The notes under the pieces: generated by a model
Told to the model about the DNA's origin: nothing
Seen by the model: the letters and a program-made list of their open reading frames with translations, nothing else
Databases searched by the model: none
Position numbers and translations under genes: made by a program
Shown: positions 28,442 through 58,396 of the stretch, piece after piece
Numbering within the stretch: position 1 is the stretch's first letter
How the letters are laid out: each line of letters begins with the position of its first letter
Assembly (NCBI GenBank): GCA_964247055.1
Contig: OZ176060.1
Span: forward strand, 248,001 to 312,000
Direction: 5' to 3'
DNA length: 64,000 bases
Source: Paragordius varius
Taxonomy: Eukaryota > Animalia > Nematomorpha

Positions 28442-29252
28442 TTAATTATGTGTATTTTTAATATGCCTGGCAAGACTGCTTTTTTGAGTATATTCCTTTT
28501 TGCAAATCGGACATACATGTTTAATTTTCTCATGAATAGCATGAATGTGTGTTGCAACATCTCCTCTTTGAGTAAATTGTTTTTTACAAATCGGACATTC
28601 ATGTTTAATTTTCTCATGAACTGAATATATGTGCCTTCCAAGATGGCTTTTGTTAGAAAGCAACTTTGAACAAATGCTGCACGGATATTTCACTTGTTCA
28701 TGAACAGAACGAATATGTTTGGTCAAGCCGCTTTTATCCTTATAAATCTTATCACATTGAATACATCGAAATTATTACCCAATTTTGTAGAATTTAAGGA
28801 CTCAATAGATTTTCCATTATTATTGTTATCATCAAATAGCTTGTTAATATCATTCAAGCTTATGCCATTGGAATCAACATTTGAAGATACCGAGCTTATA
28901 TCTTTTACCTTTTTTGGTGATTTGTATAGAGAAAAATCTAAAGGTTCTGTCTGTTCTCCTACCAAATTAATTATTAGGGTATCTTTGTTGGTTTCGGTAT
29001 TTTCATCATTTAAATAATTATTTTGTTGAGTATTTTCGCTTTTATGTTCCCTTAAATAACAAAGGTTATGGAAAGAAGCGTTCAGAATTCTTCTTAAATC
29101 ATCATTTGTAAAATCTTCATTTTCCAATAAATTGATAAATGATGTCAGTTTAGATGGATCATCAATATACGTTTCTTGTTGATTTTTAAGTTCCACTTTA
29201 TAAAGCTTAGTATCGAGATCACACCAAAGTTTGTAAGTCGTGTCACCGAAAT
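28442..29252 (-). pseudogene. C2H2 zinc-finger paralog D (4 fingers), one 1-bp deletion from intact
   Basis: Acceptor TTTTTAG|AT at 29252; (D)FGDTTYKLWCDLDTKLYKVELKNQQE...LENEDFTNDDLRRILNASFHNLCYL, then linker. AATAAT-T-TCGATGT lacks one base at ~28769 compared with G and F. Fingers CIQC, CSIC, CPIC, CPIC all retain C2H2 ligands. Confidence 0.9.
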
Positions 29253-32200
29253 CTAAAAAAATTGTTAGAAATGTAATTTAATAAGGCAAGTTATCAATAA
29301 TGAAACAATAAATCTTCACAGTCCAAGAAATGACTTAAAACTCAGTTGTACAGGTTTATTATTCTAACTATAAAAATTACAAACTTGGCAAACATTAAAC
29401 AATACAGTAATGATAAAAACCAAATGATAATAATGTAAAAGCATTAAGAAAAATATTTTTTTTATAAAACTATACTTATTAAAAGGAAAACTTCTACATA
29501 AACTATTATATTAAATATGATATCTATATTAACAATTATATCATTATGCCTATTTTGCAACTCGAATCAATGAGTGTTATATATAAAAAATTTCTTTATA
29601 TCTGTACATTATTGGATTTTAGTGGAATTAGATTTAATTTCAAATTTTTAATAAAAGAAAAATTATTAAATAAATGTAATGCATAAAGTCGAGGATTGGT
29701 AAAATATTTTAATTGAAACAAATAAAAAAGACAAATCTTATAAAGAAAGACTAATTGAGATTTTGAAATCAAAATTAATTATTTATCATGCTAATTTAAT
29801 TAAATTAAAATATGCAAAATAAATTAAAGATATTTATTATTATTATAATTATTATTTTATATAAAATATGTTCAGTTCTTTGTCTAATAAATTGTTATGA
29901 ATATTAATATACAGGGTGATGCTAGATATTTTTACATTAAAATAAATTATGAATTTCATTTTTACGATTTAAATATTATATATATACTTAAAAATCAGAA
30001 AAGAAATATTTTATGAATATTAATAATTAATAACAAAAATCATTCAAAATTTAAATTTATTTATAAATTGGAAAAAAATTTCTAATCTAATAATTATCTA
30101 AAAATATTATCTCAATTTTGGTATATATTATAAATATAAACTATAGTTAAGAATAATTTTTAAAACATGATAATTAATAATTTAAATTACAAAAAAATAA
30201 TCCATTAATTAAACAATTAAATTAAAAACAAATTATTTCTAAAAATTAGAATAAATAATAATATTAAAATTAATAAATTTAATATATAGAATTAATTTAA
30301 AATAAATTAATTAAAATATTTTTTACAAAATTTATAAAAATATAAAAATTTTAAAAAATATACCCATTTTCCAAATAAATTTGAATATTTTTTTGAATAA
30401 ATAAAAAGCAGACAATTAAAAAAAAACGTTAAAAAAAATCGTCTGTTCTTTCATTTTATATTTAAAAATCAACGTTTTTTATATTATATTATGGTTTAAA
30501 AATATTATGTTATTAATTTATTTAATTTTTATATTTATTTTATTCTTTTACATATAATTTTTATTTCTGAATAATTATGTTAAATAATCAATTATTTCTT
30601 TAATTGTCAATTATTGACGTAAATATTTTTTCGTAAATAATTAAATAATAAAAAGTATTCAATAAAATATTTAAAATTCTTAATTATTGGAATCGCAAAA
30701 TAAATTATATGACATATATTATATATGTAAATGGAAACCACCCTTTTATAAAAAAATATTTCAATTTTAAAATAACTATATGTTTCCAGGCAAAAATTTT
30801 AAGGCCAGAGAATTTTGGCTGAACTCGAATAAATTTAATATTAAATTTTATCTTAAAATTTAATATAATTAATTATATTGAGAAAATATTTTGTTAAAAA
30901 TATTTAACCTTAATATAATACTTACAAGTGCTGATACTAGATACAAAATTGTCATAAATTATCATATATATTTTGGTAGATACAGTAAAAATAATAATTA
31001 TACAAATAAAACTTTGAAACCAAAATACAAATATTTTTTGGAAAAATTCACCATACTTTTTAATAATTTTAGCATAAACAAAATATGCTTTTAGATATGA
31101 TAAAATTCGGTGAAAGATTTCTATTACATCAGAATTTTGATTAAAAAAGTTGGGTAATTAATCGTAATATACAATTTATAATTAACTTATATTTAAACAC
31201 CACAAAATAATCGAAATTCTGAGGTGATGTATTTAAGATATAGTCAATCCCGTTAAATAGCATTCATTTTTGTGTAATTTTAATTTTATTTTATTCCAAT
31301 AACGTTTAATGGTATTTTTGCAATATTTATTATATGTAATAGTATTTATATTTTATTGGCCATATTTTGGTTACCCCTTTTAACAAACATTTTTCTCACC
31401 ATAATTCAGTTTACGGCATTCTTGTTGTTTTAAGTCATGGCAATAGTATAAATATAAAAATAGGAAGTTAAAGATTTATTACTGTTTTATAAAGGTTAAC
31501 TATTATAGGTTCATTTTTGGATATGTTTTTGATTGAGAACTAAGAGATAACCTATAATTAAATAACATTCTATTGCACCTATATTAGTTTTAAAGTACCA
31601 ATAAAAAAAATATGGATTTATATAAATTAAATTTTCCAAATGTGAAATCAACAATCTAACATTATTACGGAAAACTCACATGAATAATTTAATTTACTTA
31701 AATTGGAAAGAGTATATTATGATAATAATTTGATACAATATAACCTTAAGTTTATATATAAGCGATTTTTCATACAATATTGCTAGAGCCAAAAAGAGGC
31801 AATCAAGAGGGGCAGAAAATAACTACATTTCTTGGTTAATGAATTAATATTTAAATTACAGTATTTGGATTTTTACAATTAAAAATATATAAGGACAAAT
31901 GTTTTTTTAAAAGATTACCTATGTACTTTTATAAGCTTGATATGTTTTAAAATTCATGATTATTATAAACTACAAAGTAGGAAATAGAGATTTATATGGG
32001 TTAAACAATCAAATATGTATTATACAATTGCACAATTAAATAATAGGGGAGAATAATGTTTAAAAAAATTATGGTTATTTTTTATAAAAAAATATTTGTT
32101 ATATTGATTAATTTTTATTTTTGGTTTAAATAGATGGCTTATTTACTCTCATTTGTTACGTCTTATGTAATATAATCTTTTAGTAACTCTATAATACAGT

Positions 32201-34881
32201 TATTATTAGGTGCATATATTTTTAAATGATATCATTTTTTGATATGTTATAAATTGTTAAATATTATTGGGTCCTTACATTTGCTCTTTGTACATCAAAG
32301 GACATTTTTCTAAAAATAAAATTTTTGTTTAAAAACCATAATTATATTTAGTCAATTAAGTTATTTAATTTAATAAGGATCGTGTCTAATTTATTAAAGG
32401 TTTATAATATTTGTATTACAGTGCGTCCGAAATCGGGAAGTATAAAAAAATAATCTGATGACATATATGTATATAAATATTCTGACAAGAGAATGTAAAG
32501 ATTATCATGGTGCTTCTTTTGATTTTTGCTTTTACGAGTGATTTAAGAAAGTTATTATTAACAGTTTTATGGTGAGTGATCTTTATCAGAAAATGGCAGA
32601 ATTTGCCCACATTTCTTAAATAATTTTTTAATAAAAGCTAACTGATAATTCAAAAATATTATTAACAAGTATAGTTATTGATAATAACACAGCGTCTCAC
32701 AAATATCCTAATGTAATATATATTCTTAGGAAAATGTATCATATGGTGCTTTTGTTAAGCCCTTACGAGTGATTCAAGAAAGTTATTTAAACTTTTGTGA
32801 GAAATGTTCCATATCGCAAAATTTGAAAACAATTTTTTTAAATAATTTTTTTTGGTGACTATAGGCTTCAATGCTAAAAAATCACTAAATAATTTATTAT
32901 ATATACATATAGAGTTAAAACAATATAAAAACTTTAATTTTTAGAAGTGGCCCAGATGGTCCCATATTATTCGCTCTTCTAAAATAGGATAGTCCTTTTA
33001 AAATAAACGTCAAAATGCCGAGATTGCGCAATATTTAAATATATTTGATACAAAAAATATTTATATAAAAATACAAATTTTTTTAATCTAATTTTTATCA
33101 AAATTTTGAAGCTACTTCATACTATTTTAAGGTATGATGAAAACAGTATAAAATTGAGATAATAAAATTTTTTTTACATAATTTGATAATTCTAAACATT
33201 TATATCATCTCATTTCGATTATAAGATGATTCTTCAAGTTAAATATAAACTTTTTACAATCAAAATAATTTAAAGCAATCAAACTTATCTAATTAAATGA
33301 ACTTTGAAATGTTATCACTATTGAATTATATTTAAAAAAGTTTATTTTAATGTCTTAAAGCGTTTTATACCTTTTTTGCTAAATTTATTTTATAAGTTTA
33401 TTTGTTATTTGATAAAAATTTGGCGAAAATTGTTACCCGTTTTTTAAAAAGCATGTATTTTAAATTGAAAATAGCAGAGCCGTATTCCCTTAGATTAATT
33501 AAATAGATGGTATTTTTACATGTTTTTCCAGTCAAATTAAACTAACTGTGTTAGAATAAACATTCACCTATTTTTACTTTTATGGAGTTTATAAGCATAA
33601 CATATTTATCCTACATATATTACTATAATATTACCAATATGTCTGTTATTCTAAATTGTATTTTATAAATATAAATAAATTAATCATCTCTAAACTAATC
33701 CAAATTTTCAAACAAAGAAACTAACACAACTAAAACTCGCCAATGTAAATAATTAAGTCTATTTTTGGTTCATATATAGACGTTTGCTTTTTGGAGTATT
33801 TATTTACTTTAAAATATTACAATATAATCTGAATATTTATTAGAATTGAGTTAAAAAATGATAAAACAATTTTTTTATAAATTTAAATTTCAGAACACCA
33901 ATTTTTAATATATATTAGGGTCTTAATTATTTTTGAAATATTTTTTGCACAATGATTTTTTATATTTAATCATATAACTAAAAATTTTTTTTAGACTTGA
34001 ATTTTTCTGAATTTTTTTTTCAATTATCTTCGTGAAAAAATATTCTATTATCAAAGAGTCGGTTTTTTCAAGATTAATCAATTAACAGTTTAAAGGAAGG
34101 GGGTCCAACACTTGCGGGTCGCATTTTTAGCTCAAAAATTACGACCAACTGCATTCGAAATATATATGCGAGCTTTCATAAATAATTTATATGATTTCAA
34201 ACATAAGACGTCGAAACAAAAGGACATTCTTGCTATTTGACATTAATAAAAATTTTCTCAGGAATATCAATTTTACTAAGATTTTGCGAACATGTTTTTG
34301 CAAATTATAAATTCCAAGTTTTTTTGCAGGCAGCACGGACAGAGGGCCAAACACTGCCCCCCTTTGGTGTTAATCATTTAATTTTATAGTAAAGATGAAT
34401 AACTTTTAAGTAAACTTTTCTAACCATTTTTCTGGCTTTTTTTGTCGTTTAAAATAATTGACTGCTTCTCAAAAATATCAGAATCGCAAAATAAAAAAAA
34501 TTAAATTTTATTAAAAAAATTTTTTTTTTAATGAAACATAATTATCTTTAATAAATTATTTAATATTTCATCAATAAAAACTGATAAAATTGTTAATAAA
34601 TATAGGTTGGTATTTTTAAAATAATAATAGTTATTGAAAATTAACTATTTTTAAATGTATACAGTATTTATATTAATTTTTAAAAATTATAATTGTTAAA
34701 CCATCAAATAATAGAAAAAGTATAAAATGAAACGACAGACGATTTCTTTTTAAACGGTTTTTTAAATTGTCTGCTTTTTATTTATTCGAAAAAATATTCA
34801 AATTAAATTTGGCAATCATGATCAGGTCAGTGAACATTTATTTTTGGACCATGGTCATTTAGAGGTTGGTGGTATTTTATG

Positions 34882-34895
34882 AGAGAGAGAGAGAG
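34882..34895. repeat. (GA)n microsatellite
   Basis: Seen directly. Confidence 0.85.
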
Positions 34896-35879
34896 ATTTT
34901 ATTGATTTTTTATATATTTTTTAATATAAATTAAATATTTAAATATGCCTTTTTAACAATATAAAATTGTTAAACATGCATCTTTATGACATTAGCATTA
35001 GGCATATTCATCGATTCAAAAAATAATACAATCAAGCTCTTTGCAAAATATGCAATCATTCCATATATATAAACAATGAAAACATATTTTATAATTGGAT
35101 ATTTCAATGATGAAAGAAAGTGTAAAATAAACTAGGTAAAATTTTATTTGAAATATTCAGTATTCAGCTATGTATTTGAAGATTCAGAAGGCGACAAATA
35201 TGTGACAAAATCTATTCGAAAACAAAATTTTTGATTAAATTTGATTGGAAATATATGTAAAATAAGATATATCAAAAATGTATATAATACAAAGCAAGAA
35301 AATATAATTAATGAAACGCAAGTGTCGTTAGAGCATTATTTTCACAATCCAATATCGCATGATAATTTAAATAAAAAGTAGGTCTGACCGGACTTTTTTT
35401 TGAAAAAGCAGTCAAATGCAAAACCCTAGTTGTCACATATGCTAATTTGAAAGTAAATCTTAGTTTTGTTAAATTCAAAACAAATTTAGGAGTGGTAAAG
35501 ACGTCAAAACTTATGATATGAAGGCCAATATTAGGAAAAAGCGCTATATTTTAATCTACTAAATAAACTCATTGTTTAAACTGTTTAAAATATATATGTT
35601 GGTAACACAATCATTTATATATTTCAAATGTAATTGAATAATTTTACAGTAAAAAATCAAATTATAAGGACAAAACTTAATAGAGACAAATATTTTTATA
35701 TAAAAGAAAACGATACATTTCCCAACCTAAATTTATCCTATTACAATTGTATAATACATAAATTAGTTTTCATTTTACAACTTTATTTCTTACTTTATAG
35801 TTTAAATCAATGTTAATATTATGAAGACTAAGAAGATACACAAAGTATGATTGATTGTTTTTTAGTAAAACATATTTGA

Positions 35880-35881
<2 letters not shown>

Positions 35882-35946
<65 letters not shown>
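35882..35946. repeat. (TA)n microsatellite
   Basis: Seen directly; it abuts the foldback element. Confidence 0.95.
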
Positions 35947-35948
<2 letters not shown>

Positions 35949-36300
35949 TTTACAGTTCAAATTCACCCTTAAACAATTCATATTCATCCTTGAACAATTA
36001 AAATCCACCCTAAAAATAAATTATGTGTTTTCGAACTAATATAACACATTATTAAAATAAAATATATCTTTATAGCATAACTAATAGTTTTTTTCAGTAT
36101 TATGTTAATTTAAAACAAAATTTTATTTTTTAAAAATATATTAAAATATAGGTAATTTTTGATCTTAAAAAACATTTAATTTATTTGAGGGTGAATTCGA
36201 TTTGTTCGCGAGTGAATTGGAATGGTTTAAGGGTGAATTTGAATTGTTTAAGGGTAAATTTGAATTGTTCGAGGGTGAATTTGAATTGTAAATGGTATAC
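35941..36300. mobile_element. Foldback-like MITE with TIRs built from 21-bp subrepeats
   Basis: Left CATTTACAGTTCAAATTCACCCTTAAACAATTC..., right ...GAATTGTTCGAGGGTGAATTTGAATTGTAAATGGTATA. Unit CAAATTCACCCTTGAACAATT occurs about 3 times on the left and about 5 times on the right. Confidence 0.8.
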
Positions 36301-36489
36301 ATACATTTAAGCACGATTATAAGAATATATAATATTTTCATTTTTTTGACTCATGGATATAATATTTTTATTGTTATTTTAGGATTGTGTTTCTATTGCT
36401 TATACAGTAAAAAAATTAAAATTATACGGACGAAACGTAATATAAAAATAGTTTTTTAAAATGACAACCACCATACTTTTTAAAGCTTA

Positions 36490-37260
36490 TCCCGATAGAA
36501 ATTCATATATTTAAATGCTCTAAATATACATTGTGTTATCAATTAACATTTCTATTTAATACTAATAAATAGAATTAAAGCTATTTTGTGAAAATTAGTA
36601 GAAATATAATTACGTACTCATATTTGTTATAATTATTACAGATGTAAATATTATTCTTTTCAATTTGTAGAATGTTTATCAAAAACTTATTAATTAGGAA
36701 TTTTAATTATTTAACCTGCTCTACGTTATTTGAATATAAGTAGCCGCGGTAATTTGACTGTGCGAAGGTAGCATAATCATTTATTTTTTGATTGGAAAAT
36801 CAGGATGAAAGGTAAAACTACTAATGGAAAAATATTTATAAAAATTGAAATTGTAATACGTGTGAAAATACACGTGTGTATAAAAAGAAGGCAAGACCCT
36901 GGGAGCTCTCCTTGTAAGTTTGTGAGGTTGATTGGGGCAATCAATGCAAAAAATTAAATTTCAATTTGATCCACATAGTTGAGTTGTGTGAGAATAAGAA
37001 AAAGTTACCCCAGGGGTAACAGCGTAATACAGTAACAGTAGGCCACATACTTTACAGTGATTGCGACCTCGATGTTGAATTATTAGATCTACTTTTTGCA
37101 GTAAAAAAGTAAGAAAGTCTGTTCGACTTTTAAAATAATCCATGATTTGAGTTCAGATCGGTGAAAGCCAGATCGGTTCCTATCTTTTATCTATAGTTTT
37201 AAAAGGTAGTACGAAAGGGCCCCTTTTATTTTCATAGTTTAGCATATTAATGCGTTAAAT
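36490..37260 (+). rRNA. rrnL: Mitochondrial large-subunit (16S) rRNA fragment inserted in nuclear DNA (NUMT); outer boundaries approximate
   Basis: Conserved metazoan 16S blocks in the correct order: TGTTTATCAAAAAC (36673, 16Sar site), GCCGCGGTAATTTGACTGTGCGAAGGTAGCATAATCA (36743), AAGACCCT (36893), GTTACCCCAGGGGTAACAGCGTAAT (37004), TTGCGACCTCGATGTTGAA (37061), TGATTTGAGTTCAGATCGG (37143, 16Sbr site), AGTACGAAAGG (37208). It is flanked by nuclear MITE sequence. Confidence 0.93.
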
Positions 37261-37263
37261 TTA

Positions 37264-37620
37264 CAGTAAAATATGTAATTATCCGGACGAATTTTTTAAC
37301 TAACAGACATAATTTTTTTATAAGAGACAGAGTGTTAAAATCAAAAGATTATAATTTTTAATTGGCGGACAAATTTTTTTTATACGGACATAAATCCGAA
37401 ATATAATAGGGTGAGAGGAGCTCTTATCTATAACACTGGACAACATTTCTGCCACTCGAGTTTTTTGCATTTTTTGATATTTAGTATCATTCTAACAGTA
37501 AATCTGAAATAAAAATGATAACCCGTTGGAAGAATTTTGTATAATTTGATATTTTTGATTATGCGCCCTCTTTATCAAAATTTTACTAAAAAATGTTTTT
37601 TTTCGAAAATATACAAGTAA
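37264..37620 (+). mobile_element. TA-CAGT-starting element, copy of 18468-18828
   Basis: High identity to 18468-18828; starts immediately after the NUMT. Confidence 0.7.
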
Positions 37621-41126: not shown

Positions 41127-41930
41127 TCAATTATGTACATTTTTAATATGCCTGGCAAGACTGATTTTTTTGGTATATACCTTAAGACAAATCGGCCATT
41201 TATGTTTAATATTCTCATGAATAGCATGAATGTGTGTTGCAAGATGGCATTTTTTAGGGATTTTTTTTGCAAATCAGTCATTTATGTTTAATTTTCTCAT
41301 GAACCGACTTAATGTGCCTCCAAGATTGCTTTTGCTAAAAAACATTTTTGAACAAATTTTGCACAAATATTTAATTTGTTCATGAACAGAACGAATATGT
41401 TTGGACAGACCGTTTTTAAACATATATATCTTATTACATTGAATACATCGATAATTAGTATCCAATTTTTGAAGAGTTCAAAGACAGAATAGGTTTTGTA
41501 TTATTGTTATCATTAAATAAATTGTTAATATCATTCAAGCTTATGCCATTGGAATCAACATTTGAAGATACCGAGCTTTTATCTTTTACATTTTTTGGTG
41601 GTTTTTTTAGAGAAAGATCTAAAGGTTCTGTCTGTTCTCCTACCAAATCAATTATTATGGTATCTTTGATGGTTTCGGTATTTTCATCATTTAAGTTATT
41701 ATTTTGTTGAGTATTTTCGCTTTTATTTTCCCTTAAATAACAAAGGTTATAGAAAGAAGCGTTCAAAATTCTCCGTAAATCATCGTTTGTGAAATCTTCA
41801 TTTTCCAATAAATCAAAAAAAGATGCCGGTTTAGATGGATCATCAATATACGTTTCTTGTTGATTTTTGAGTTCTACTTTATAAAGTTTAGTATCGAGAT
41901 CACACCAGAGTTTGTACGAATCGCCAAAAT
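41127..41930 (-). pseudogene. C2H2 zinc-finger paralog E, multiple frameshifts
   Basis: Acceptor TTTTTAG|AT at 41930; DFGDSYKLWCDLDTKLYKVE...LENEDFTNDDLRRILNASFYNLCYL. Frameshift in an A-run at ~41465; fingers 1-2 recognisable, later ones broken. Confidence 0.9.
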
Positions 41931-43817
41931 CTAAAAAAATTTTCAGAAATCAAGTTATCAATGAAGAAACAAAAAATCCTAACAACACAAGAAAGGAATC
42001 TAAAATCTAAAACAGGTTATTACTATAAAATGATGATGCATACATAAATCATAGAGTAATGGTTGAAAATACACAGACAAAAAACATAAAGAAATCATAG
42101 TTTATAAACTAAAACTTTTCAACATATAATATTATGTGTGATATCTTAAATTCATTATATTATCAATTACATCTCTAACCCTATTTTATAAATCATGAGT
42201 GTTATAATATAAAGTATGGCTGTCAAAAATATATTTAGTTTTTTCCCTTATATCTGTACGTTTTTGGATTTTACCGGTATTAGATTTAGTTTCAAATTTT
42301 GACTATTTAAAATAAAGATTATCTAATATTAATAAAAGAGTTGCAGAAATTCGCGGATTGGTAATAAATTTATTTTTATCAAGACAACTAACCCCACAAA
42401 TGACACAAAACTATTATATGGAAAATTAATTAAAAGTTTAAAAATTAAACAATTTAAAATTTTTCTCAAAAAAGGCGGTGTTGTTTTAAAATTATTTTTA
42501 TTATTATTATTATACCAAATTTAATATTTTTACCAATCATTTTAATAAAAACGTCTATTAATTTTAATATTAGGTAACTTAATGTTTTATGATGAGTATT
42601 TGTTAAAACATTAAATTATATTAGGAATTTTATACATATATTTTTTGAAACCAGAAATAATTATTGATAAATAGAATCATATAATAAAATAATTAATAAA
42701 AAATTTACAAATCTAAATATAATTTAAAATACTATCAACTATAAATGATATAATAGGTTCTATTTTAATATTTTAAAACAAAATTAATACTAAATTAAAT
42801 CATAAAAAATATTTAAATTTTTTTAAAACAAATTATTTTGACATTTTATTACAAAAAATATATATTTAAATAAAATATGATATGATAAATAAATTTTAAT
42901 TAAAGTATTTGATAATATATGAATACCCATTTTTCAAATAAATTTGAATATTTTTTCGAATAAACAAAAAGCAGACAATTTAAAAAACTGTTGGTATAAT
43001 CGTCTGTTGTTTCATTTCATAATATTTAAATTATTTTCAATAATTTTTGGGTTTAACACATTTTAAATAAAATAATTTTTTAATATTTTAAATTATATAT
43101 ATAATCTTAATTTACCTTAGAAGTATATTAAATATTTTAAATAATTACGATTTTATTTATTAATAATTTAAATAATATATTTAACTAAAATATATTATAT
43201 ATTAATTTTGATTTACTTTTAACCTGCACTTACTAAATAATAATACTTTTTTCAATTACCAAACTTTATTTATTTATATTAATGACGGGGGTTGATTATG
43301 TTATGTGATTTAGATTATTTTTTATAATTATCATATAAAATATAAAATTTATTTTGATAACATAGTATTTAATGCAAATATTTCTGATGATATTTTTTAT
43401 TTATTAGAGAAAACAATCTGTCAATCCTTTTATAACATGAATATTCTAAAAAAAATATTAAGAAGATAGCATGAAAGATAGTAAAAATATTTTAATCGGG
43501 ATATCTTTATTTTGCGATTTTCCGCTAAGTAAAAGTTTGGCATGTAAATGAATTTATATTTTATAAAAGACAGCGCCATTTTTAATGTTAAATGCCCATT
43601 TTAATAAATCTATCTCTTCTAAAGAATAAACTGTACTTTTATTGCTATAATTAAATATAAAATTATTAAGTGGTTGACAAATATGATTGTGATTCTATCA
43701 TTACATAATAAATAGTTTTGTTTAATTTACATTCAAAGATAGATAATATCGTCCACATTTATTTTCCATATCTTATAAATGAATACAATTATATTTTCTG
43801 TAGAAAAATATTTTTAA

Positions 43818-46519: not shown

Positions 46520-47030
46520 TGTAATTGAATATTTTTTTGTGATTTAATTTATTATTAATTATACTAATTTAACATATTAGTGTTTAAAAGATATATAAAT
46601 AAATATTAAATTTTTAGTTAATATTATTAGATTATTTCTTAACTATGAAATAAATTATTTTTTATTTGAATTATTTAATCAATAATTAATTTAAAAATAA
46701 AATATTTCTTATATTAAAAATAATAAAACTTATAATCTAGTTTAATGTTTCAACAATAAATTTATATTATATAAGATCAAATTACCAATATTAATTCCTA
46801 GTCTTTATTGATATAATTATATAGACTCATAATATAATAATACTAGTTATATTTAATTAATTTTATAAAATAATTAATACCGCTTTTTGGAGAAAAACAT
46901 TAAATTGTTTAATATTTTAAAATTTTAATTTATCATATAATAGTTTTGTCATTTTTAGTGTACATGGTATTAATAAATATATTTTATCAATCCTGCTTTA
47001 TAAGCGACTTATATGTAATCTTATATTAAT
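46520..47030. repeat. Direct repeat of 27232-27745 (block B)
   Basis: Shared TAATTGAATAT.TTTTTGTGATTTAATT start and ATAATAGTTTTGTCATTTTTAGTGT...TTTATAAGCGACTTA end. Confidence 0.8.
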
Positions 47031-47032
47031 AA

Positions 47033-48156
47033 CACTGCTCAACAAGGTTTTGCACCACCCCATTATTTTTGCATTTTCTGATACCTAATGGCATGGAAAG
47101 GCCAAAACAAAAAAGAAAATTGAGGCCGTTAATAGGATTTTTCCGAAATTTAATTTTTAAATTTGTATTTAATTCAAAAATAACAATCATTCCTCGTGCA
47201 CATATGTTTAAATATTCAAACGAACAAGTTGATACAAGTAATATTCCATGCATGAATAACAAAATTCCAGGTATTAAATAAGATACTAAACAAGCTAAGA
47301 GCCAAAGTATTAAAAATCCAAAAAGGGCTTATGTATAGTGTGATAGATATGGGCGGCTGCACAAGCTCTGCATATCCCCCAAGCGATCCAATTATGCCAG
47401 ATATGGCAAAGATAACAATAAGTAATCATAAAGCCCGATAAGAGAGACTTGCAAGCAAAATTCAGGCAAATTGACATGTCAAATTGATCAATTTACAGAA
47501 TAAAGTTAGATAAATACAATTAAATTGAATATAAATTAGGTAAATACAAATGGTCCAACATAACAGTAAATTCTACTAAAAGTGGCTACACAACATCCAT
47601 CTGAAATTCAAAATACAAAACAACCAATAATTTAAAAAAAATAAGGTATATCCACTAGGTATAAATAAAGGATTTTTTATAAGAACCAACTCAAGAGAAA
47701 CAGTCTAATAAGTACTCGAAAGAACGAAAACTAACAAAAAAATATAACCTATCTGAAAGCCGAAGGTTTAAACCATAGAATGCCTTTTTTTGTATTTTTG
47801 TAAAAAATTTTTATATGTGTGAAAAATTCACTTAAAAAAAAGACTAAATTTTGACGTTTAAGTCCGTCTATTTTTTTCTCTCTGATATTTAAATGACATA
47901 TTTATATTCAAAAGATAGAGTTTAAAACGCTTTATTAAATGATATTAAGTTTATAATATAATAGCATTTTATTATAAAGTTATATTTATCTCGATTTTCA
48001 CTTGTTTTTGAAAAATTGAAAAACCTATAAAATTTCAGAATTCTGATTGGCGGGATCAAAATTTTTTTGAAATTCGGTTTTAAAACACTGAAATTAGTCA
48101 AAATCTAAAAAGTTTGAGTGGTGGTGCTTAAAAATGTCCAAATTTGTCGACTAGTG
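47033..48156. mobile_element. Tc1/mariner-like non-autonomous element (copy A2, inverted relative to A1)
   Basis: Reverse complement of 26101-27229; ends ...TTTGTCGACTAGTG|TA at 48156. Confidence 0.75.
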
Positions 48157-48411
48157 TAGTTTATGTAGAAAAGTTTTCCTTTTAATAAGTATAGTTTTAT
48201 ATCATAAAAAAATATTTTTCTTTATACTTTAACATTTTATCTATCAATTATAATCATTAGTGTAATGATTTAATGTTTGCAAAAGTTGTAATTTTTATAG
48301 TTACAATAATAAACCTATACACAAAGTTTTATGTCATTACTTGGGCTTTTAAAACGAATTTTATCATTAATAATTTGACTTTTCAAATTACATTTATACA
48401 AATTTGTTTAG

Positions 48412-49354
48412 ATTTCGGCGGTTCGACCTACAAACTTTGGTGTGATCTCGATACTAAACTTTATCAAGTAGAACTCAAAAATCAACAAGAAGAATATATT
48501 AATCCATGTAAACCGGCATCTTTTATTGATTTATTGGAAAACGAAGACTTTACAAACGATGATTTACGGATAATTTTGAACGCTTCTTTCCATAACCTTT
48601 GTCATATAAGGGAACATAAAAACGAAAATGCTCTACAAAATAATAATTTAAATGATGAAAATAAAAATGATACCAAAACCAACAAAGATACCCTAGTGAT
48701 CTTTCTCTGAAAAAATCACCAAAAAATGTAAAAGATATAAGCTCGGTATCTTCAAACATTGATTCCGGTAACATAAGCTTGAATGATATTAACAAGCTAT
48801 TTGATGATAGTAACAAAAAACCTATTAAATCTTTAAACACTCAAAAATTCGACAATAATTATCGATGTATTCAATGTGATAAGATATATATGTATAAAAG
48901 CACCTTAACTAAACATATTCGTTCTGTTCATGAACAAGTGAAATATCCGTGCAGAATTTGTTCAAAGATGTTTTCTTGCAAAAGCTCTCTTACTCAGCAC
49001 ATTAAGTCATTTCATGTGAAAATTAAACATGAATGTCCGATTTGTAAAAGAGAATTTACTCAAAGAGGAGATGTTACATCACACATTCAATCTGTTCATG
49101 AACAAGTTAAATATCCTTGTCCGATATGTAAAATAGATTATTCTAGAAAAAGATATCTCACCAAACACATTCTATCTGTTCATGAAAAAAAAACATGATT
49201 ATCCCATTGGTAAATCGGTATTTTCTAATAAACCAATCTTGCATCGCTCATTCAATCTGTTCATGAACAAATTAAACATGAATGCCAGATTTGTAAAAAG
49301 GAATATACGGACAAATACTATTTTAACAGGTACATCAAAAATGTACATAATTGA
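48412..49354 (+). pseudogene. C2H2 zinc-finger paralog F (6 fingers, 4 intact), frameshifted
   Basis: Acceptor TTGTTTAG|AT at 48412; DFGGSTYKLWCDLDTKLYQVE...LENEDFTNDDLRIILNASFHNLCH. A ~30-bp deletion at ~48700 removes LVGEQTEPL and shifts the frame. Fingers CIQC, CRIC, CPIC, CPIC follow, with further frameshifts at ~49190 and ~49240. Confidence 0.9.
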
Positions 49355-49734
49355 ACACTTTATAAATATATGTAGCATGTGTTCATAAATATAATTTGCT
49401 TAAAAATTATGATTTTCGCAAATGTTATATATTGAGATTAATGTTATTTTATGAAGTTTTGCAAAATGCATCATTAATAAAATATTTGAAATGCTATTTG
49501 ACCGCTCTGTTCTGGACCTTTTTTTGTAGAAAAAAATTACAGTAAAAATCAAAATTATACCGTCAAAACCTAAAAATATAAACATAAATATTTTATTTTA
49601 GAACAACCATAATTTTATCTCCTTGATTTTCTTAATTATAACTGATTGGCCTACATTTTAGATTGTAAAATAGAGTTTAATTCGTAACAAATCTTTTTTC
49701 GACAAATAATCTATATAAATATTCACTTTTTTTT

Positions 49735-50265
49735 TATACCATTCGCACTTCAAAAGTGTCCTTGAAAACTTCAAGTTGGTCCTTGAACGTTTCAGGTTGG
49801 TCTTTGAACATTTAAAGTTGATCCATAAATACTTAAAATTAGTCATTCATTTTTGTTTGTTTATACCTTTTATCAATCAAATCGTTAATCATTCATCTAT
49901 TTATCGTTTTTAACTTATTTTCTATTACTAACATAAATTTTAAATCAATATCAACTTTTAATAATTGAAAAACCGTATAGCTTTATTATTTTCTCTAAAT
50001 AATTTAGGATATTTATAAGATGTTAACACTTAATTAAAAAATATATAATTTTGCTGGGTTAACATTTTTAATTTCGAAGACAATTAAAAGTCAATAATTT
50101 TGTTAAATGGAAAAAATAGTTTGAGACAAAAAAGTGGTTTTAAATTAAAAAATATTATATTAAATGAATAATATGAATAAAAAGGTAGGTTAAAAAATCA
50201 AATACATTCAAATATTTTAAGGACCAACTTGAAGTGTTCGACAACACTCTTGAAGTGATGGTATA
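49735..50265. mobile_element. MITE/foldback element with subrepeated TIRs
   Basis: TATACCATTCGCACTTCAAAAGTGTCCTTGAAAACTTCAAGTTGGTCCTT and AAGGACCAACTTGAAGTG...CACTCTTGAAGTGATGGTATA. ~21-bp period; shares the TATACCAT terminus with the 35941 family. Confidence 0.75.
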
Positions 50266-51064
50266 TGATAAGCATAACATATTCATATATACTACTAAAC
50301 TATAGCCAATGTGTTTAGATCACCTCATAATATATATTTTTGGTTAAATATATATATATTTTTAAATATTTAATTATCTAAACTAATTCAAATTTCTAAA
50401 AGGAACTAAGGAGATTAAATGTTAAATTATGGCTATCAAAACTAGCTATTTTATCTAAAATAAACATAAACCCCAGACACATTGTTAAAACTTATTATAA
50501 TCAAAATTTTATTATAATGAAATTCTAAGGGTTAAACAGGCAAAAATTTTAGTTTTTAGGAAAACATCAAGAGTATAGACATAGGAGAGTTAAAAACCTA
50601 ATCTTTCAAGTTTAGGTTACGCATAATTTGTATATATTTTGCCATTTAATTTCGTATGATTTTCAAATAATACACATAAAATTTTTAAATTAATCAACTG
50701 ATCTAAATTCGTATATTTATATCGTCAAATAATATTAAAAGGAGAGTAAATATTTTACATATACGGACAAAATGTAAAATATGAAGACAAATATAATTTT
50801 TCAAAAAATCATGCATTCTAAATCTTAATAAATTTAAATTTAACTCACATTATGTATATCTTGATAATGTTAAACATTTACACCTCGAACATTTTCGAGT
50901 TTATTTTAAAATAACTAGCCCATTTATGAAGAGCGATGAAATTTGGGATTCGGGGTCTATATCAAAAAATTAAAATATTTGAAATATCTGTTTGTCTATT
51001 TATAAGTAATTTATGATAAAATTTACTGATATTTACAAATGAACCGTTAAACCTTTATCAAAAA

Positions 51065-52372
51065 AATATATTTAACATGATGTGCGCAAATTTTGCCATA
51101 CTCTGTTATAAACCGTTGCAATTAAAGTGTAATTTTGTTAAAACAGTTGTGGAGATCAAAACCAAAAGCCCTATGATATTCCTGATACTTTTCCTATCGA
51201 ATAATTTTTTTTATATATTTCAATTTTATAATTAAGAAGCCTTTAGAAAGAGGATATAAATTAATTGTATTATCACGAGCTGATGAAAAATATAACGCGG
51301 AGTTTTTTTTAAAGAAAATTTGACTTTATTTGGTCTTTCAAGTCGAATTCACGACAACAAGTAGCCTACGAGTAGTATTATATGTGTTATTAATTATCCA
51401 AATTTGTTAAAATTTTTTTATATTTATAATAATAAAAATTGTAGTATTTTATATTTTTGTACTATGCAAATATTATAACCATTGTTTACTCGTATAATTT
51501 TGTATGTATTATCGCTAATCATATTTATTTGGTAAATTACCATCACAGAAATTTCGTTTAAAACCTATATACTAAGTGAATGATCATTTTCACATATATT
51601 TTATTATAGCGGATAAATGTAAAAATTAACTATATAAATTGAATAGTTAAGTATATGCCATCTTTTTAATGTTTATATTTAATATATATCGTAATTAGTT
51701 CAAAGATAGTTTATTAGGAATGTATAAAAAGTTATGTTACAATGTTGACTCACCAATAATAAAGTACATGACTGAAAAAATTGTTTTGATTTTCTTCTAA
51801 ATATTTTTATTAATTTTCAATTATCATTATATCTTGTTTAATGTTGAAATTTATAATATTTTATTGTGAAATTAAGCTAGAATTCGCATTAAATAAAAGT
51901 CGAAAATAATTTTAATTCATATCCATTCGATTATTTTGATATAAATTACCTTTTATATTATGCGGAATTCTCTCAATTATTCTACATTCTACCATTTTTA
52001 AAAAATATAAACATTTTTAGGAGGCACGAATATATAGAGTGCTGTGTTTTGTCCATATTTGGGTATCAATAGCAACATAAGGGGAATTCTTCCATGATTC
52101 AGTAAAAATTAAACTTATACGGCAAAAAACGTAAAATATAAAGAATTATTTAAAAGATATCCATTTTATCATTTTCGGCATAAAAATTGTATTGTTAGAA
52201 TTAAGAAATATGTATTGATTGTGTTTAGCATAAACTTTTACTACTTTGAAATATTAACGAATGATATATAAAAAAAATAAAAATTTAAAGTACTGAAAAT
52301 TTGACTATATTTTACGTTTTGTCTGTATATCAATTAAAACTGTATTAAGAAATAAAATAAATTAACTGCTTA
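51065..52372. repeat. Segmental duplication, direct copy of 560-1770
   Basis: See partner. Confidence 0.9.
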
Positions 52373-52975
52373 TGAAATTGAATAACTTTATAATTAATAT
52401 AAAACAATTATAATATTTTTTTTAAGATCTTTTCCTTCTTCAATCAATAACATTATTTATTTACTATTTAAAAGTATTCTTTTACAAAAGATATAATTTA
52501 TTAAAATAAATAAAGATATTTAGAATATATGAAGAAAAGTGCTGCGCAACAATCAAGGGCGTGGGGAAGTTACAAGGGGAAAGAAAGAGAAATTATTATT
52601 ATATATAAATATATAAAAAATAAAATAAAAAAAGAAATATATATATGATTACAATGATGCATTTGTTGGGTTGTTGTCTATGAGGGAATTTCGACCGCTC
52701 ATAAACATGTGATACATATCCGAGGATAATTTGATAGTATTAGTGGCTATTGACTTCTTAAGTTGTGTAGGGTAACGAAAACTGATTTTGTCGAATCGAA
52801 TGTAGTTTTTTGACTACCAGGAACCGAGGCTCCCTACAACAACTGGGATGACCTGGGTGTTTCTGTAGGTTTCCTGTAATTGTTGAGCCATACAGCTATA
52901 CTTCATTATTTTATTGTTATAGGCCGTTTCGAATGATTCTAGTCTTTTTTCAAACGGCATATTAAGTGTAAACCC
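52373..52975 (-). mobile_element. 3' end of an RLE-class non-LTR retrotransposon (NeSL/Utopia-like): endonuclease domain plus 3' UTR
   Basis: Minus strand 52960-52649 reads MPFEKRLESFETAYNNKIMKYSCMAQQLQETYRNTQVIPVVVGSLGSW*SKNYIRF...LKKSIATNTIKLSSDMY. PFE...A...K..KY...VVGSLGSW is the restriction-like endonuclease signature of NeSL/Utopia/R2-group elements. There is one in-frame TAG at 52814-52816. The boundaries are approximate. Confidence 0.85.
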
Positions 52976-53461
52976 AGCCAAAAATTAATATCAATTATTG
53001 AAAATTTTCCTAACAGAAATTAAAGCAAGGTTACTTACATTTATATTACATTAATGGCTATATATAACATATTTTTTAATTTAATTCAAAAGCGAAACTA
53101 ATCCGATAATTAGGCATATTTTATAAATGTCTTTTTTTAGATAATGTAAACCGAATTATATATCATTTGTAATATACTCGCCATCTATTTATAAAATCAT
53201 TTAAAATCATTGGTTAACATAGATAATATATATTAATTTCAAAATCTTCCGTTGTTTGACTTTAGCAGCCAACAAAAGCGACAACTTAAGCGCGATTGCG
53301 ATCTGTCAATATATAGAATACCATATATAAATAAACTCCAGAACAGACCAGTAAAAGAATGTGCCAAATATTTAATTAATTAAGTGATTTTTTTACATTT
53401 TTCAAATCGCCATGAAATAAATATAATCACCATATATTTTATTTATAAAAAAATAAAGATA

Positions 53462-53712
53462 CAGTAAAAATTGAAATTATACGGACAAAAAGACAATATT
53501 TTTTTCAAAAATCAACCATACTTTTTTAATTTGATTTTTTTTAATATACCTCATTTTAAACTACAAAGTATAAAATAATGTAAAATGGTAATACCTTTTA
53601 TATATACAACATTAATTAATAATTAATATAAGATAAATTATGTTTAAATAAGTATGGTTGTTTTTTGAAAAAATTAGTCTTTATATTTTGTCCGTATAAT
53701 CAATTTATACTG
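53462..53712. mobile_element. pogo/Tc1-mariner-type MITE
   Basis: TA|CAGTAAAAATTGAAATTATACGGACAAAA and TTTTGTCCGTATAATCAATTTATACTG. Confidence 0.85.
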
Positions 53713-53753
53713 TTATACCATATATAATTTAATTGTAAAATTACCAGCATACA

Positions 53754-54006
53754 CAGTAAAAATTAAAATAATACGGACAAATGTAAAAATATACAGATAA
53801 TTTTTTTTCAAAGTCACCCCCTCTTTAAATCCTGATTATTTTCAATATAACTCATTATTTAATCGAAAATGTAAAAATATAGATGTAAATAAAAAACCCC
53901 ATCAATTATATATTTTACATTGTAAATAATTTATGTAAACAAAATATCTTGAAAATATTTGTCTTTATATTTTTACGTTTTGTCCGTAAAATTCCAATTT
54001 TAATTG
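53754..54006. mobile_element. pogo/Tc1-mariner-type MITE
   Basis: CAGTAAAAATTAAAATAATACGGACAAA and TTTGTCCGTAAAATTCCAATTTTAATTG|TA. Confidence 0.8.
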
Positions 54007-54912
54007 TAACATAATGCTCTATACATATATATAGATATGAAAACTATTTTTTTGAGTTATTTTTTTTAATTTAAGGTCCAATTTATTTTCGTAAGATACA
54101 ATGGTTATATAATAACAAAACCTAGAATTTAAGTCATATTAATACCTTTTAGCATGTTGTATAAATCCAAATTAGCTTTTTATAAATTGATAAAGATTCC
54201 ATCAACTTTCAGCGATTATATGCTCTTATTTTTTGCCAAATAGGCACACAAATTATTCAATTTGACTAGTCATTCGTTGAAGCGAAAGAAAGACGCATTT
54301 TTCACAATAACCTACAATATGTTACAACTTCTACTAAAATGCGCAGATGTATTTTACGTAGCGTAAATTATAAAATAACGTATAGCTAAATTAAATTTGG
54401 TTAAAAATTTGACTTTCTTCTAGTTGAAGTTGAGAATTAGTTCAGAGCAAATAGTCAACGGTTATTACTTTTTAAATTAATAATTTTATTACATCGAATA
54501 AATAGATATGGCGTTTACAAAAAATGTTTTCGTTTTAATAAATCTATGATGTTGTTGTTTTAAAAATTTTTTCGTCACAAATATAACAATAGGTCAAAAA
54601 AGGAGTTACGAATATGCCATCACCTTTTTGTTTAGTATGTTTAATGGATAATAACCTATAAATATTTTTTTAACCAAAACTCACTTGACAAGTAAAATAA
54701 TATTATTTTGAAATTGACCAATAATAAAGTATATGGCTAAATAATTGATGTTTTGGTTATCTAGAAACCTAATAAAGTATATTAATGTCTTTAAATTGAT
54801 AATCTATTTACTACACACAACAAATGTAACATTATTTTAAAATTTTTCATTGCTTGTGTTGTATGTCATAAATAATCATAATATATCACCATGTAAATTA
54901 TTTTAAAAATTA

Positions 54913-55172
54913 CAGTAAAAATCAGAATTATACGGACAAAATGTTAAACAAAGACAATTTTATTAAACAACCGAATCCTTTAAATCTTTATTATAAATAT
55001 GACTCATTGTTTTATACAAGTTATAATATCGAATTAATTGGTAACACAATTAATTGTGTATTTTACGCTTCTAATTTTTAAAGGATAAAAGATTTACAAA
55101 GTATGGTTGTATTTTGGAAAAAAAATTATCTTTATAATTTTACGTTTTTTCCGTATATTTTCAACTTTAGTG
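54913..55172. mobile_element. pogo/Tc1-mariner-type MITE
   Basis: TA|CAGTAAAAATCAGAATTATACGGAC and CCGTATATTTTCAACTTTAGTG|TA. Confidence 0.8.
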
Positions 55173-56830
55173 TATTACGCCATATCAAAAAATATATTAA
55201 AGGCGATGAGCTATTGATTTCACTTCAATTTTAATTGATTTTAATGATTGGAGGAGCGGCTTTTGTTTCATTGAAAATCAAATAAACATAACCAAAACTA
55301 CAACAAATGTATACCTTATCTCCCATATTAACAGAAATTAAAATTATACGCAAGTGTATACTTTTTTAAATTTAATTTTTCCCATATTAGCTATTTAATT
55401 ACAATTGTAAGAATTAATTGTGTTAGTTGTATATGTCTTTATTTTACATTTTTTTCATTTTAAACAATGAGTTATTTTATAAAAATCAAATTTAATTAAT
55501 AAAGTTTGTCTTTTAAAAAAAAATATTTGTCTTTATGTTTTACATTTTGTCCGTATAATATCAGATTTATTAAAAAGATTTAACTACAGGTATATTAACA
55601 ATAATGACACCATAAAATTATTTTATTACATTGACCATTATAATACAGTTTCAATACCTCACATTAACCGTAACATTATTTAGGTAATTTAAAAATTTAT
55701 ATTATATTAGTGAGCCAAAAACTAAATAATATACAGACGAATCAGGATTTTATTAACAATGATTAAGGTAGCTTAGTTAGTTCAATAAATATATAAAATA
55801 CACCAATTTTTTCAATGATTGAAAAAGAAACAAGTCCCACAATTAGTCATAGAAATTATAAATTATATATAAGTAAAAATCGAAAATTTACGAATATAAA
55901 AATATTATGACAAAAATTCACTTACCAAAAAAAATCATACTATTTTAAACTGTAATTTATCCTATAATACAAACTATTTAATTATTAATGTATGTATATA
56001 AAATGGGTACCAATTTACATTTTATATTATACTTGTAATTTACAATGAGTTTTAATTAAAAAAATCAAGATTAAAAAGTATGGTTATCTTTTTAAAAATA
56101 TTTGTGTTTATAGTTTCACGTTTTGTCCGTATAAAAAAGAACTTGCCATTTTGAAACGTAAAAATTTATTTGTTATCAATCAACATTTATCAACCAACAA
56201 TATCGAGAAGCTAACCGTTTTGATTGCGCAAAAAATATTATTTATTTTTATCTTTTTTAAAATATGTGATATTTCTGTAGGTTAAATTTTTACTCTTCTA
56301 TTTCTTGTTTATGTATTTTTTAAACGACACCTTCATTAATAAAATTTGTCAATTTTCAATTAGCAATATTTCGGTAAATTTATATTATATACAATTTTGT
56401 TTTATATATTTTAATTTTCAGTTACCCTATAAATATTATCGCCAAAAAAATTTCTAAATTATTTTTTTAATAATCAAAATTTATGCAAATATTTTATAGT
56501 TTTAAACGCTTAGTGCTTAGCGGTTTTTTATACAGGGCTAACGACAGAAAGTTTGAGTTGATAATTACATTGAAAAGGCGTAGCACGCTGATCAAGCCGT
56601 ATAGCATATTTGTTATATAGATAGAAAACTTAGAGTATATACAGTACCCTTTTTATTGTTGGACACTTTTTATTTTAGCCCAATCGGTTTTACAGTGTGT
56701 GAGTAAAAAATAACAAACGGTGTGAAATATATGTCTTTATAACAACATTAAATTTGTTTATTAGTATGGACAAAATTGCTTTGTACCATACACTACTGTA
56801 TTGCTAATTGGCTTACAATTAAATGAGTTA

Positions 56831-57070
56831 CAGTAATACATAGCGGACAAAACGTAAAAATATAAAGAAATTTTTTTGTAAAACAACCATACTTAATTTT
56901 TTACACACGAACTATTGAATTAGAATTGTAAAATACGTAATTGATTATACTTGATTTTGCAATCTGAAACAAATCAGTCAATTAAGAAAATAGTAAAAGT
57001 TATGGTTATCTGTAAGAAATATTTATCTTTATATTTTTACGTTTTGTCCGTATAATATCGATTTTTACTG
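56831..57070. mobile_element. pogo/Tc1-mariner-type MITE
   Basis: TA|CAGTAA...GGACAAAACGTAAAAATATAAAG and TTTACGTTTTGTCCGTATAATATCGATTTTTACTG|TA. Confidence 0.8.
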
Positions 57071-57321
57071 TAAATCTACAAAAACTCCACAAAAAACCGG
57101 TCAAAAAGCATCATTTTATTAAAGAAAATGCATATTGCAAAACTCCATAAAATAATATTAATCTCAATATATTGCGAAATGTATATTTAAACAAAATACA
57201 TTTAATACTACATTTTATATATAATATATGTTGAATTAAGTGTTCAATTATGTACATTTTTAATATGCTTGGTAGATTGCCTTTTCCAGTATATTCCTTA
57301 AGGCAAATCGGACATTTATGT

Positions 57322-58298
57322 TTATTTCTCAACAGACTGAATGTTCGATGCAAGATTAGTCTTATTTGAAAATTCCGATTTACATATGGGATAATCATGT
57401 TTAGTTTTTTCATGAACAGATTGAATGTGTTTGGTAAGGTATCTTTTTCTAGAAAAATCTTTATTACAAATCGGACAAGGATACTTAATTTGTTCATGAA
57501 CAGCATGAATGTGTGATGCAACATTTACTCTTTGAGTAAATTCTTTTTTACAAATTGGACATTGATGTTTAATTTTCCTGTGAACACTCTGAATATGTGT
57601 TGCAAGAGAGCCTCTTTGAGTAAATTCTTTTTTACAAATCGAACATTTATGTTTAATTTTCTCATGAACCGATTTAATGTGCTTAGCAAGATTTTCTTTT
57701 TGAGAAAACTCATATTTACAAATGGAACATGCGAATTTAACTTGTTCATGAACAGAACGAATATGTCTGGCTAAAACATGTTTATCCTTATAAATTTTAT
57801 TACGTTGAAGACATCGATAATTATTACCCAATTTTGAAGAGTTTAAAGATTCAATAGGTTTTGAATTATTATTGTTATCATTAAATAAATTGTTAATATC
57901 ATTCAAGCTTATGCCATTGGAATCAACATTTGAAGATACCGAGCTTATATCTTTTACATTTTTTGGTGATTTTTTCAGAGAAAGATCTAAAGGTTCTGTC
58001 TGTTCTCCTACCAAATCAATAATTAGGCTATCTTGGATGGTTTCGGTATTTTCATCATTTAAGTTATTATTTTGTTGAGTATTTTCGCTTTTATGTTCCC
58101 TTAAATAACAAAGGTTATGGAAAGAAGCGTTCAAAATTCTCCGTAAATCATCGTTTGTAAAGTCTTCGTTTTCCAATAAATCAATAAAAGATGCCGGTTT
58201 ACATGGATTAATATATTCTTCTTGTTGATTTTTGAGTTCTACTTTATAAAGTTTTGTATCGAGATCACACCAAAGTTTGTAAGTCGATTCACCAAAAT
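57322..58298 (-). CDS. C2H2 zinc-finger paralog G, main exon (4 intact fingers); first exon not identified; possibly a young pseudogene
   Basis: Acceptor TTTTTAG|AT at 58298, in frame with the 284-aa ORF. Finger 1 has lost a Cys (CLQR), fingers 2-5 are intact, finger 6 is degenerate. The ancestral last finger (57244-57320) is frameshifted off. Confidence 0.65.
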
Positions 58299-58396
58299 CT
58301 AAAAAATTTGTTTGATTTTAAAAGATGAAATCTCTTAACATCCCAACAAAATGGTTTAAAATCTAGTTAGATGACGTTAGTTAAATATTTCTGATA

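Follow-up and report, generated by a model that had tools for sequence, protein, structure and literature searches.

The zinc-finger repressors that depend on the co-repressor CtBP (ZEB, Knirps, Kruppel, Snail, KLF3/8 and ZNF217) are conserved, mostly single-copy developmental regulators. Fast-evolving families of zinc-finger repressors are understood from KRAB in tetrapods, ZAD in insects and FiNZ in carp-like fish, and Wells et al. (2023; PMC10547256) state that dozens of ZNF families of this sort, still uncharacterised, exist across animals. We analysed a stretch of 64,000 nucleotides from the nematomorph Paragordius varius (contig OZ176060.1, positions 248,001 to 312,000; C11:248001-312000 in the numbering used here, and called the window below), which contains four copies, D, E, F and G, of a gene that joins an N-terminal segment of 72 amino acids (aa) to an array of C2H2 fingers. 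We consider it fairly probable that these copies are members, mostly dead, of a lineage-restricted, tandemly amplified, birth-and-death C2H2 family, whose products would be CtBP-coupled repressors carrying an orphan protein-interaction domain.

Each of the described systems resembles this family in part. Like the KRAB-ZNF genes of tetrapods, its members have a putative N-terminal effector region ahead of a C2H2 array, lie in clusters where transposons are frequent, undergo birth-and-death, and combine variable contact residues with a conserved N-terminus. ZAD-ZNF genes also place a module of ~70-90 aa at the N-terminus of lineage-specific, clustered C2H2 genes, and dimerisation is plausible for both. 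The CtBP-dependent repressors carry P-x-D-L-S-x-K in a disordered region beside C2H2 fingers, and the closest finger arrays (35-45% identical and alike in H-x4-H spacing and linker style) belong to BTB zinc-finger (BTB-ZF) proteins with HEG(I/V)KY-type fingers (P0004-P0009 and P0015). FiNZ, compared here by description only and described from cyprinid fish alone, is, like the segment of this family, an orphan acidic N-terminal sequence that resembles no known domain, and it too belongs to a young, massively duplicated ZNF family (PMC10547256).

Gene structure and copies of the family

The genome assembly comprises 110.5 Mb in 44 contigs and is very AT-rich (~22% GC). A tblastn search of the window with the shared segment returned exactly the four copies D, E, F and G, whose segments are 75-82% identical in protein sequence. 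Exon 2 coordinates were refined against intact family members, and exon 2 starts at 29252 (-) in D, 41930 (-) in E, 48412 (+) in F and 58298 (-) in G. All four copies have the signature DFG.xxYKLWCDLDTKLY(K/Q)VELKNQQE...LLENEDFTNDDLR.ILNASF.NLC.L, copy E being one codon short. The 72-aa segment is followed by an Asn/Ser-rich linker and then by C-x2-C-x12-H-x4-H fingers joined by HE(K/Q)(I/V)K(H/Y)xC. An earlier note, made from the letters of the window alone, had described this arrangement of segment, linker, H-x4-H fingers and HE(K/Q)(I/V)K linkers in D to G, and the four tblastn copies and a Pfam match to zf-C2H2 (PF00096, E=4.9e-22, four stretches in copy G) bear it out. Tandem C-x2-C-x12-H-x3-5-H units that match PF00096 place the family among the C2H2 zinc-finger proteins. 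The parts of the four copies are as follows.

59335..59431 (-): copy G, promoter-proximal block with a TATA-like GTATAAG, a 5' untranslated region (5'UTR) of ~70 nt and predicted mini-exon 1 ending ATG-G; found by pattern search, and better conserved than any other upstream block in 16 loci
59338-59336 (-): copy G, ATG; exon 1 ends at 59335, followed by the donor GTATAT
58299..59334 (-): copy G, predicted phase-1 intron of ~1.04 kb, bounded by donor GT and the TTTTTTAG acceptor
58084..58298 (-): copy G, orphan N-terminal domain, protein residues 2-73, codon 2 (G/AT) being split by the intron; unmatched in Pfam, the PDB and the libraries
57976..58026 (-): copy G, LIIDLVGEQTEPLDLSL motif, a hydrophobic core like that of a SUMO-interaction motif plus P-x-D-L-S-x-K of CtBP-docking type; near-invariant in 23 paralogs
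57322..57813 (-): copy G, C2H2 array and stop codon; finger 1 degenerate (CLQR), fingers 2-5 canonical C-x2-C-x12-H-x4-H, sixth finger degenerate (DYPIC...NIQSVEK, then stop)
28442..30460 (-): copy D, pseudogene with one frameshift; TATA and exon 1 30364-30460, intron 29253-30363, N-terminal domain 29038-29252, degenerate PLDFS 28927-28977, four fingers 28445-28790, stop 28442-28444
41130..43022 (-): copy E, pseudogene; exon 1 block 42927-43022 (TATA mutated to TATGAAA), intron 41931-42926, N-terminal domain 41719-41930 (one codon deleted), PLDLS 41608-41658, finger region 41133-41468
48412..49355 (+): copy F, pseudogene; N-terminal domain 48412-48626, deletion and frame shift near 48680-48710

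Copy G is the sole window copy with an open frame (325 codons), although its fingers 1 (CxxR) and 6 (YxxC) are degenerate, and D, E and F are frameshifted pseudogenes. A single frameshift near 28770-28798, just ahead of finger 1, disables copy D. Copy E contains several frameshifts and stops, while copy F has lost IDLVGEQTEPL (the PLDLS region), carries a frameshift, has four stops in the finger array and is without exon 1.

The sequence predicts a two-exon gene, with a mini-exon (5'UTR and ATG-G), a phase-1 intron of ~1 kb and one large exon that would encode, in order, the 72-aa N-terminal domain, an Asn-rich spacer, the IIDLVGEQTEPLDLSLKK motif, a second spacer and four or five H-x4-H fingers. 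The TTTTTTAG acceptor stands right before the start of homology in 30 genomic copies, and immediately ahead of the segment in ~40 of 45 loci. The best-conserved non-coding block of the unit, ~0.9-1.5 kb upstream of exon 2, consists of a TATA box and ~70 nt ending ...TTTGGAAAATGG/GTATAT (the slash marking the predicted end of the exon); it also reads ...GGAAAATGG/GTATAT, in a phase compatible with exon 2. ATG-G, the intron and AT-TTC-GGC would give M-D-F-G... in a conserved frame (M-DFGDSTYKLWC...), the predicted splice junction joining ...AAAATGG to ATTTCGGCGA..., and the initiation context AAAATGG is good. The mini-exon ends at 30364 in D, 42927 in E and 59335 in G. Since the segment starts exactly at exon 2, after ATG-G, it would be the true N-terminus of the protein, and one exon would encode all but the Met. 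Within the ~100-nt TATA/5'UTR block (e.g. 30364-30460 (-)) the column majority is 86%, compared to 40-66% nearby, and the block holds two short words, ACAGACGA...TTGTCTGC, which are conserved and complementary to each other and may be a regulatory site.

Across the genome we found 52 matches to the segment, and 55 with a profile hidden Markov model (HMM) at E<=10, none of them more divergent; thus no divergent paralog was detected in this own-genome search. Reduction left ~46 distinct copies, which lie mostly at C11:105-642 kb and C10:3.46-3.59 Mb, with one on C2 and one at C11:1.83 Mb. Nearest-neighbour copies are 76-90% identical over ~2 kb and are therefore paralogs, not haplotigs; copy F has a twin at C11:122k that is 98.4% identical. 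The copy in C29:1-2100 is a 100% duplicate of that at C11:641k. Over the 1.77 kb compared, this 15.7-kb contig matches C11 at 100%; it is probably redundant assembly that slightly inflates the copy count. The nearest non-family zinc-finger gene in the genome (C5:5.81 Mb) was considered as a relative and proved to be an unrelated gene. Eight copies have intact open reading frames (ORFs) of 267-295 aa, all ending ...HIKNVHN, in which 3-5 fingers are recognised by regular expression and four or five by alignment. A recognisable exon 1 lies within 1.5 kb in six of these eight. The intact copies include those at C11:115k, 205k, 360k, 414k and 637k and at C10:3582k.

Selection, the candidate CtBP motif and the N-terminal domain

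We estimated the ratio of nonsynonymous to synonymous divergence (dN/dS) among the eight intact copies by the pooled pairwise Nei-Gojobori method, with 95% intervals from a codon bootstrap. The N-terminal domain (dS 0.32, dN 0.06) gave a dN/dS of 0.19 (0.12-0.33), and is under purifying selection. The ratio for the linker was 0.68 (0.47-1.03). In the fingers, the contact positions -1, 2, 3 and 6 gave 1.16 (0.63-3.09) and all remaining positions 0.30 (0.17-0.50). Contact residues thus change at a rate close to or above the neutral one, which is the pattern of KRAB, ZAD and FiNZ families. Positive selection at these residues is suggested, not proven.

The IIDLVGEQTEPLDLSLKK stretch is near-invariant across 23 paralogs, and EPLDLSLKK within it is 90-100% conserved. 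Of the window copies, E and G have PLDLS, whereas D has a degenerate form (PLDFS) and F has lost it by deletion. P-x-D-L-S-x-K is the extended CtBP-docking consensus in E1A, Knirps and Snail. A CtBP-docking motif is also present in ZEB (PMC2749851). The family stretch contains the P-x-D-L-S-x-(K/R) motif of CtBP-recruiting repressors and is a candidate docking site, and IIDLV ahead of PLDLS resembles a SUMO-interaction core and may act as one. A CtBP N-terminal exon was found in the same genome at C7 ~1,002.46-1,002.77 kb, which matches human CtBP1/2 (E=6e-20) and aligns with human CtBP1 almost residue-for-residue over a core of ~40 aa, indicating that the presumed partner is encoded in this animal. 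The gene lies within C7:995000-1003500 on the minus strand, where further CtBP-like exons are visible. Absence of CtBP had been considered when PF02826/PF00389 gave only PHGDH, GRHPR-like genes and GLYR1/NPAC, and was rejected once weak matches on C7 proved to be CtBP. The GLYR1/NPAC-like gene has a single exon encoding 573 aa (PWWP and beta-hydroxyacid dehydrogenase; C2:6889500-6893500, ORF 1030-2751 (-)). Together, the near-invariant PLDLSLK and the CtBP gene lend indirect support to a repressor role.

We then compared the N-terminal domain with public libraries. Pfam gave no match at E<=10, either with single sequences or with any of the 23 members (N-terminal 100-125 aa), and the KRAB A/B box (PF01352), zf-AD (PF07776), SCAN (PF02023) and BTB (PF00651) were each absent from these scans. 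The segment conserves two cysteines, C11 and C65, and has no CxxC pairs. A profile search of all PDB sequences returned chance-level rows only. HIV Env, which included the best row (E=0.6-2, best row E=0.6), was rejected as a chance match, as was a cathepsin propeptide (I29; procaricain, E=2.9), whose suggestive K.Y...D.KLY..E alignment is at chance level and without Pfam support. No match to the segment was found in the ESM Atlas or in a word search of 5.8 billion proteins limited to residues 1-75; the whole-protein word search returned BTB-ZF proteins with the same finger style, their fingers being 35-45% identical. HMMER against 1.84 billion representatives returned three proteins only (P0001-P0003), all internally repetitive. 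We rejected these as homologues, since their low E-values arise because many near-identical units are summed, and a single unit is non-significant. P0001 and P0003 are long proteins of 47-52-aa tandem units whose Pfam annotation consists of weak helix-turn-helix (HTH) models only, and the P0003 units (FT..RII.VLN.GGG.KNL..L.ALL) look TALE-type with an extra helix.

AlphaFold2 reached a predicted local distance difference test score of 56.6 with the 78-aa domain alignment and 44.3 with the 125-aa alignment. These models were too poor for use, and only helices ~37-45 and 50-77 recurred between them. Foldseek of the first model against the PDB found nothing at E<=0.001. As the sequence searches gave no credible relative, AlphaFold2 no reliable fold and Foldseek no match, the domain is at present an orphan for which no credible homologue was found. 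The earlier note did not recognise the segment, and held that a match to a known domain or transposon protein, or neutral evolution across the paralogs, would count against its reading. The Pfam, PDB profile, ESM Atlas, word, HMMER and own-genome searches gave no such match, and the dN/dS among the eight intact paralogs is not that of a neutral sequence.

Alternative readings and the proposed mechanism

The conservation of the segment could reflect either selection on a working protein, or the recent origin of the copies or gene conversion among them, in a decaying repeat that has no present function. That ~37 of 45 scored copies are disabled or truncated, three of the four in the window being dead, and that some copies are 97-100% identical to another, would be expected of such a repeat. 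However, the intact copies have a dS of ~0.3 and yet a domain dN of 0.06, and neither youth nor gene conversion predicts ratios that run from 0.19 to 1.16 across regions of one exon, a contrast in constraint that argues against either process alone. Eight ORFs of ~270 codons would also be unlikely to have stayed open at 22% GC and at that divergence without selection, and we regard a functionless repeat as an unlikely explanation. It is harder still to believe that the segment comes from a transposon-encoded protein and that the genes are parts of mobile elements, even though the copies lie amid LINE (long interspersed nuclear element) fragments and other repeats and the duplicated unit is compact (~2.4 kb), and we rate this origin as highly improbable. 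In the HMM search of the genome, every match to the segment lay beside a finger array of this family, and nearly every one fell within the two clusters; none was dispersed or part of a transposon ORF. The point at which homology ends differs from copy to copy, and termini are not shared. The unit carries a TATA promoter and a predicted spliceosomal intron, and no transposase, reverse transcriptase or integrase was matched in Pfam.

Two further readings concern the ancestry of the segment. It might be a truncated, degenerate BTB/POZ remnant from a BTB-ZF ancestor and not a new domain, as BTB-ZF proteins carry the closest public finger arrays (H-x4-H, HEGIKYxC style, 35-45% identical) and three blocks can be matched by eye to the start of BTB, namely YKLTW/YKLWC with the same W-x6-L spacing, LMMNEDFSDITL/LLENEDFTNDDL and NILSACS/RILNAS. 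When the segment was aligned by hhalign with the BTB domains of the nearest BTB-ZF proteins, the same register was obtained at a non-significant level (P=0.17, probability 0.35%). The alignment requires an insertion of 17 residues and a deletion of 11, over half of the BTB fold would be missing, and Pfam BTB matched none of the 23 members at E<=10; we find a BTB remnant quite unlikely. That the segment is a single degenerate HTH or TALE-like nucleic-acid-binding repeat, and not an effector domain, appears very unlikely. The sole library matches are indeed repeat proteins (P0001, 13 stretches, E=3e-15; P0003, 4 stretches, E=2.6e-6) whose units align with segment residues 26-69; the P0003 units resemble TALE-type repeats, and Pfam assigns Trp_repressor and other HTH models to both proteins. 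But one unit against the profile gave an hhalign P of 2-4e-4 and a probability of 35-49%, which is non-significant for a library of 1.84 billion, residues 1-25 are left uncovered, and the segment lacks the GG loop of those repeats.

Several points weigh against a family of CtBP-coupled repressors with an orphan interaction domain. The interval for the contact sites (0.63-3.09) includes 1, which is why positive selection is unproven, and all dN/dS figures rest on pooled pairwise estimates from eight related sequences. With stops, frameshifts or truncation in ~37 of the 45 scored copies, ~80% of the family are pseudogenes, and in the window only G is open. Exon 1, its splice and expression are predictions of the gene model. 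Given that AlphaFold2 produced no confident fold, the segment could be conserved yet only partly ordered. The public libraries, which apparently lack the proteome of this genome, returned no self hits, and close relatives may be unsampled. Finally, the NAD-binding domain of CtBP is barely detectable (Pfam 2-Hacid_dh_C, 15 bits), being divergent or insertion-rich, which makes CtBP function in this animal uncertain.

Weighed together, we still favour CtBP-coupled repressors of a birth-and-death family. If the genes are expressed and spliced as modelled, the fingers would read DNA, with a specificity that diverges between paralogs at helix positions -1, 2, 3 and 6, and PLDLSLK would dock the co-repressor CtBP, through which repression would be exerted. 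The N-terminal module probably makes contacts with other proteins, and would be a small, acidic interaction unit with a hydrophobic core that serves self-association or the binding of a second cofactor. All that points to an anti-transposon role is analogy and neighbourhood, and any link to transposons is conjectural. A bolder version, which we consider possible and rather doubtful, is that the 72-aa module arose as a new domain without detectable ancestor, for an effector function or for self-association, and that, with the hard-wired CtBP-docking motif, it defines a lineage-restricted counterpart of the KRAB, ZAD and FiNZ zinc-finger repressors that co-evolves with the transposons of this animal. 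This would be an independent invention of an 'adaptive repressor array' built on CtBP and not on TRIM28.

Remnants in the window and the place of the family

Further pieces of the family are present in the window beside the four copies.

25950..26096 (+): orphan block of promoter and exon 1, not followed by an exon 2; one G missing at the ATG-G/GT junction
13135..14252 (+): old 5'-truncated family copy (linker end, fingers, 3' flank), downstream of a LINE fragment
22715..22975 (+): family fragment, last fingers only
3..272 (-): linker fragment of another copy, cut by the window edge

A 1.14-kb repeat occurs at 26099-27237 (+) and, inverted, at 47025-48158, the two being 93% identical to each other. 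One lies directly 3' of the orphan exon-1 block at 25950-26096 and the other borders copy F at its truncated intron, the homology of which ends at 48157, at the start of the inverted repeat. Because the repeat adjoins both, an inversion or a transposon insertion is suggested to have parted copy F from its first exon. Two related non-long-terminal-repeat retrotransposon fragments (Exo_endo_phos, that is APE, and RVT_1) at 9599-12120 and 16616-19626 (+) are 88% identical over 0.8 kb, and the fragment at 9599-12120 is closely followed by the 5'-truncated zinc-finger copy at 13135.

The earlier note had placed the four copies in a clustered, birth-and-death family in a transposon-rich neighbourhood. 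Both observations hold, with ~46 copies nearly all on two contigs, and with LINE fragments encoding APE and reverse transcriptase at 9.6-12.1 kb and 16.6-19.6 kb. The parallel it drew with KRAB and ZAD stands for the layout, the clustering and the variability of the contact sites (1.16 vs 0.30), but three of the four copies on which it was based are dead. The domain as a 'counterpart of KRAB' is an analogy only, because the repressor handle may be the PLDLS motif and not the N-terminal domain.

The family behaves like KRAB-, ZAD- and FiNZ-ZNF families, yet the defining domains of KRAB, ZAD, SCAN and BTB were not found in it, and FiNZ is set apart by description. In contrast to KRAB-ZNF genes, it shows no KRAB similarity in Pfam, encodes domain and fingers in one exon, and has only 4-5 fingers, which are spaced H-x4-H and joined by HEKIKH in place of TGEKP; its likely handle is PLDLS, for CtBP, whereas that of KRAB is TRIM28. 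The ZAD binds zinc via four conserved cysteines, unlike the segment, which conserves two (C11, C65) and has no zf-AD match. FiNZ is 28 aa long, has its own exon and is present in ~700 copies in zebrafish, compared to 72 aa, ~46 copies and an added CtBP-type motif here. The CtBP-dependent repressors differ from this young, amplified, largely pseudogenised cluster with its extra orphan domain, and BTB-ZF proteins have a full BTB domain at the N-terminus, to which the segment has no significant similarity.

This is not a new kind of system, and the genes in the window are mostly dead. With ~46 copies, ~8 of them intact, proteins of only ~270 aa, an N-terminal domain without detectable ancestor and an explicit co-repressor motif, the family would offer a compact, tractable case in an invertebrate lineage that has been little studied. 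It would allow one to ask whether CtBP can act as the silencing hub that the members of an adaptive ZNF array have in common, and what a newly arisen N-terminal domain contributes.

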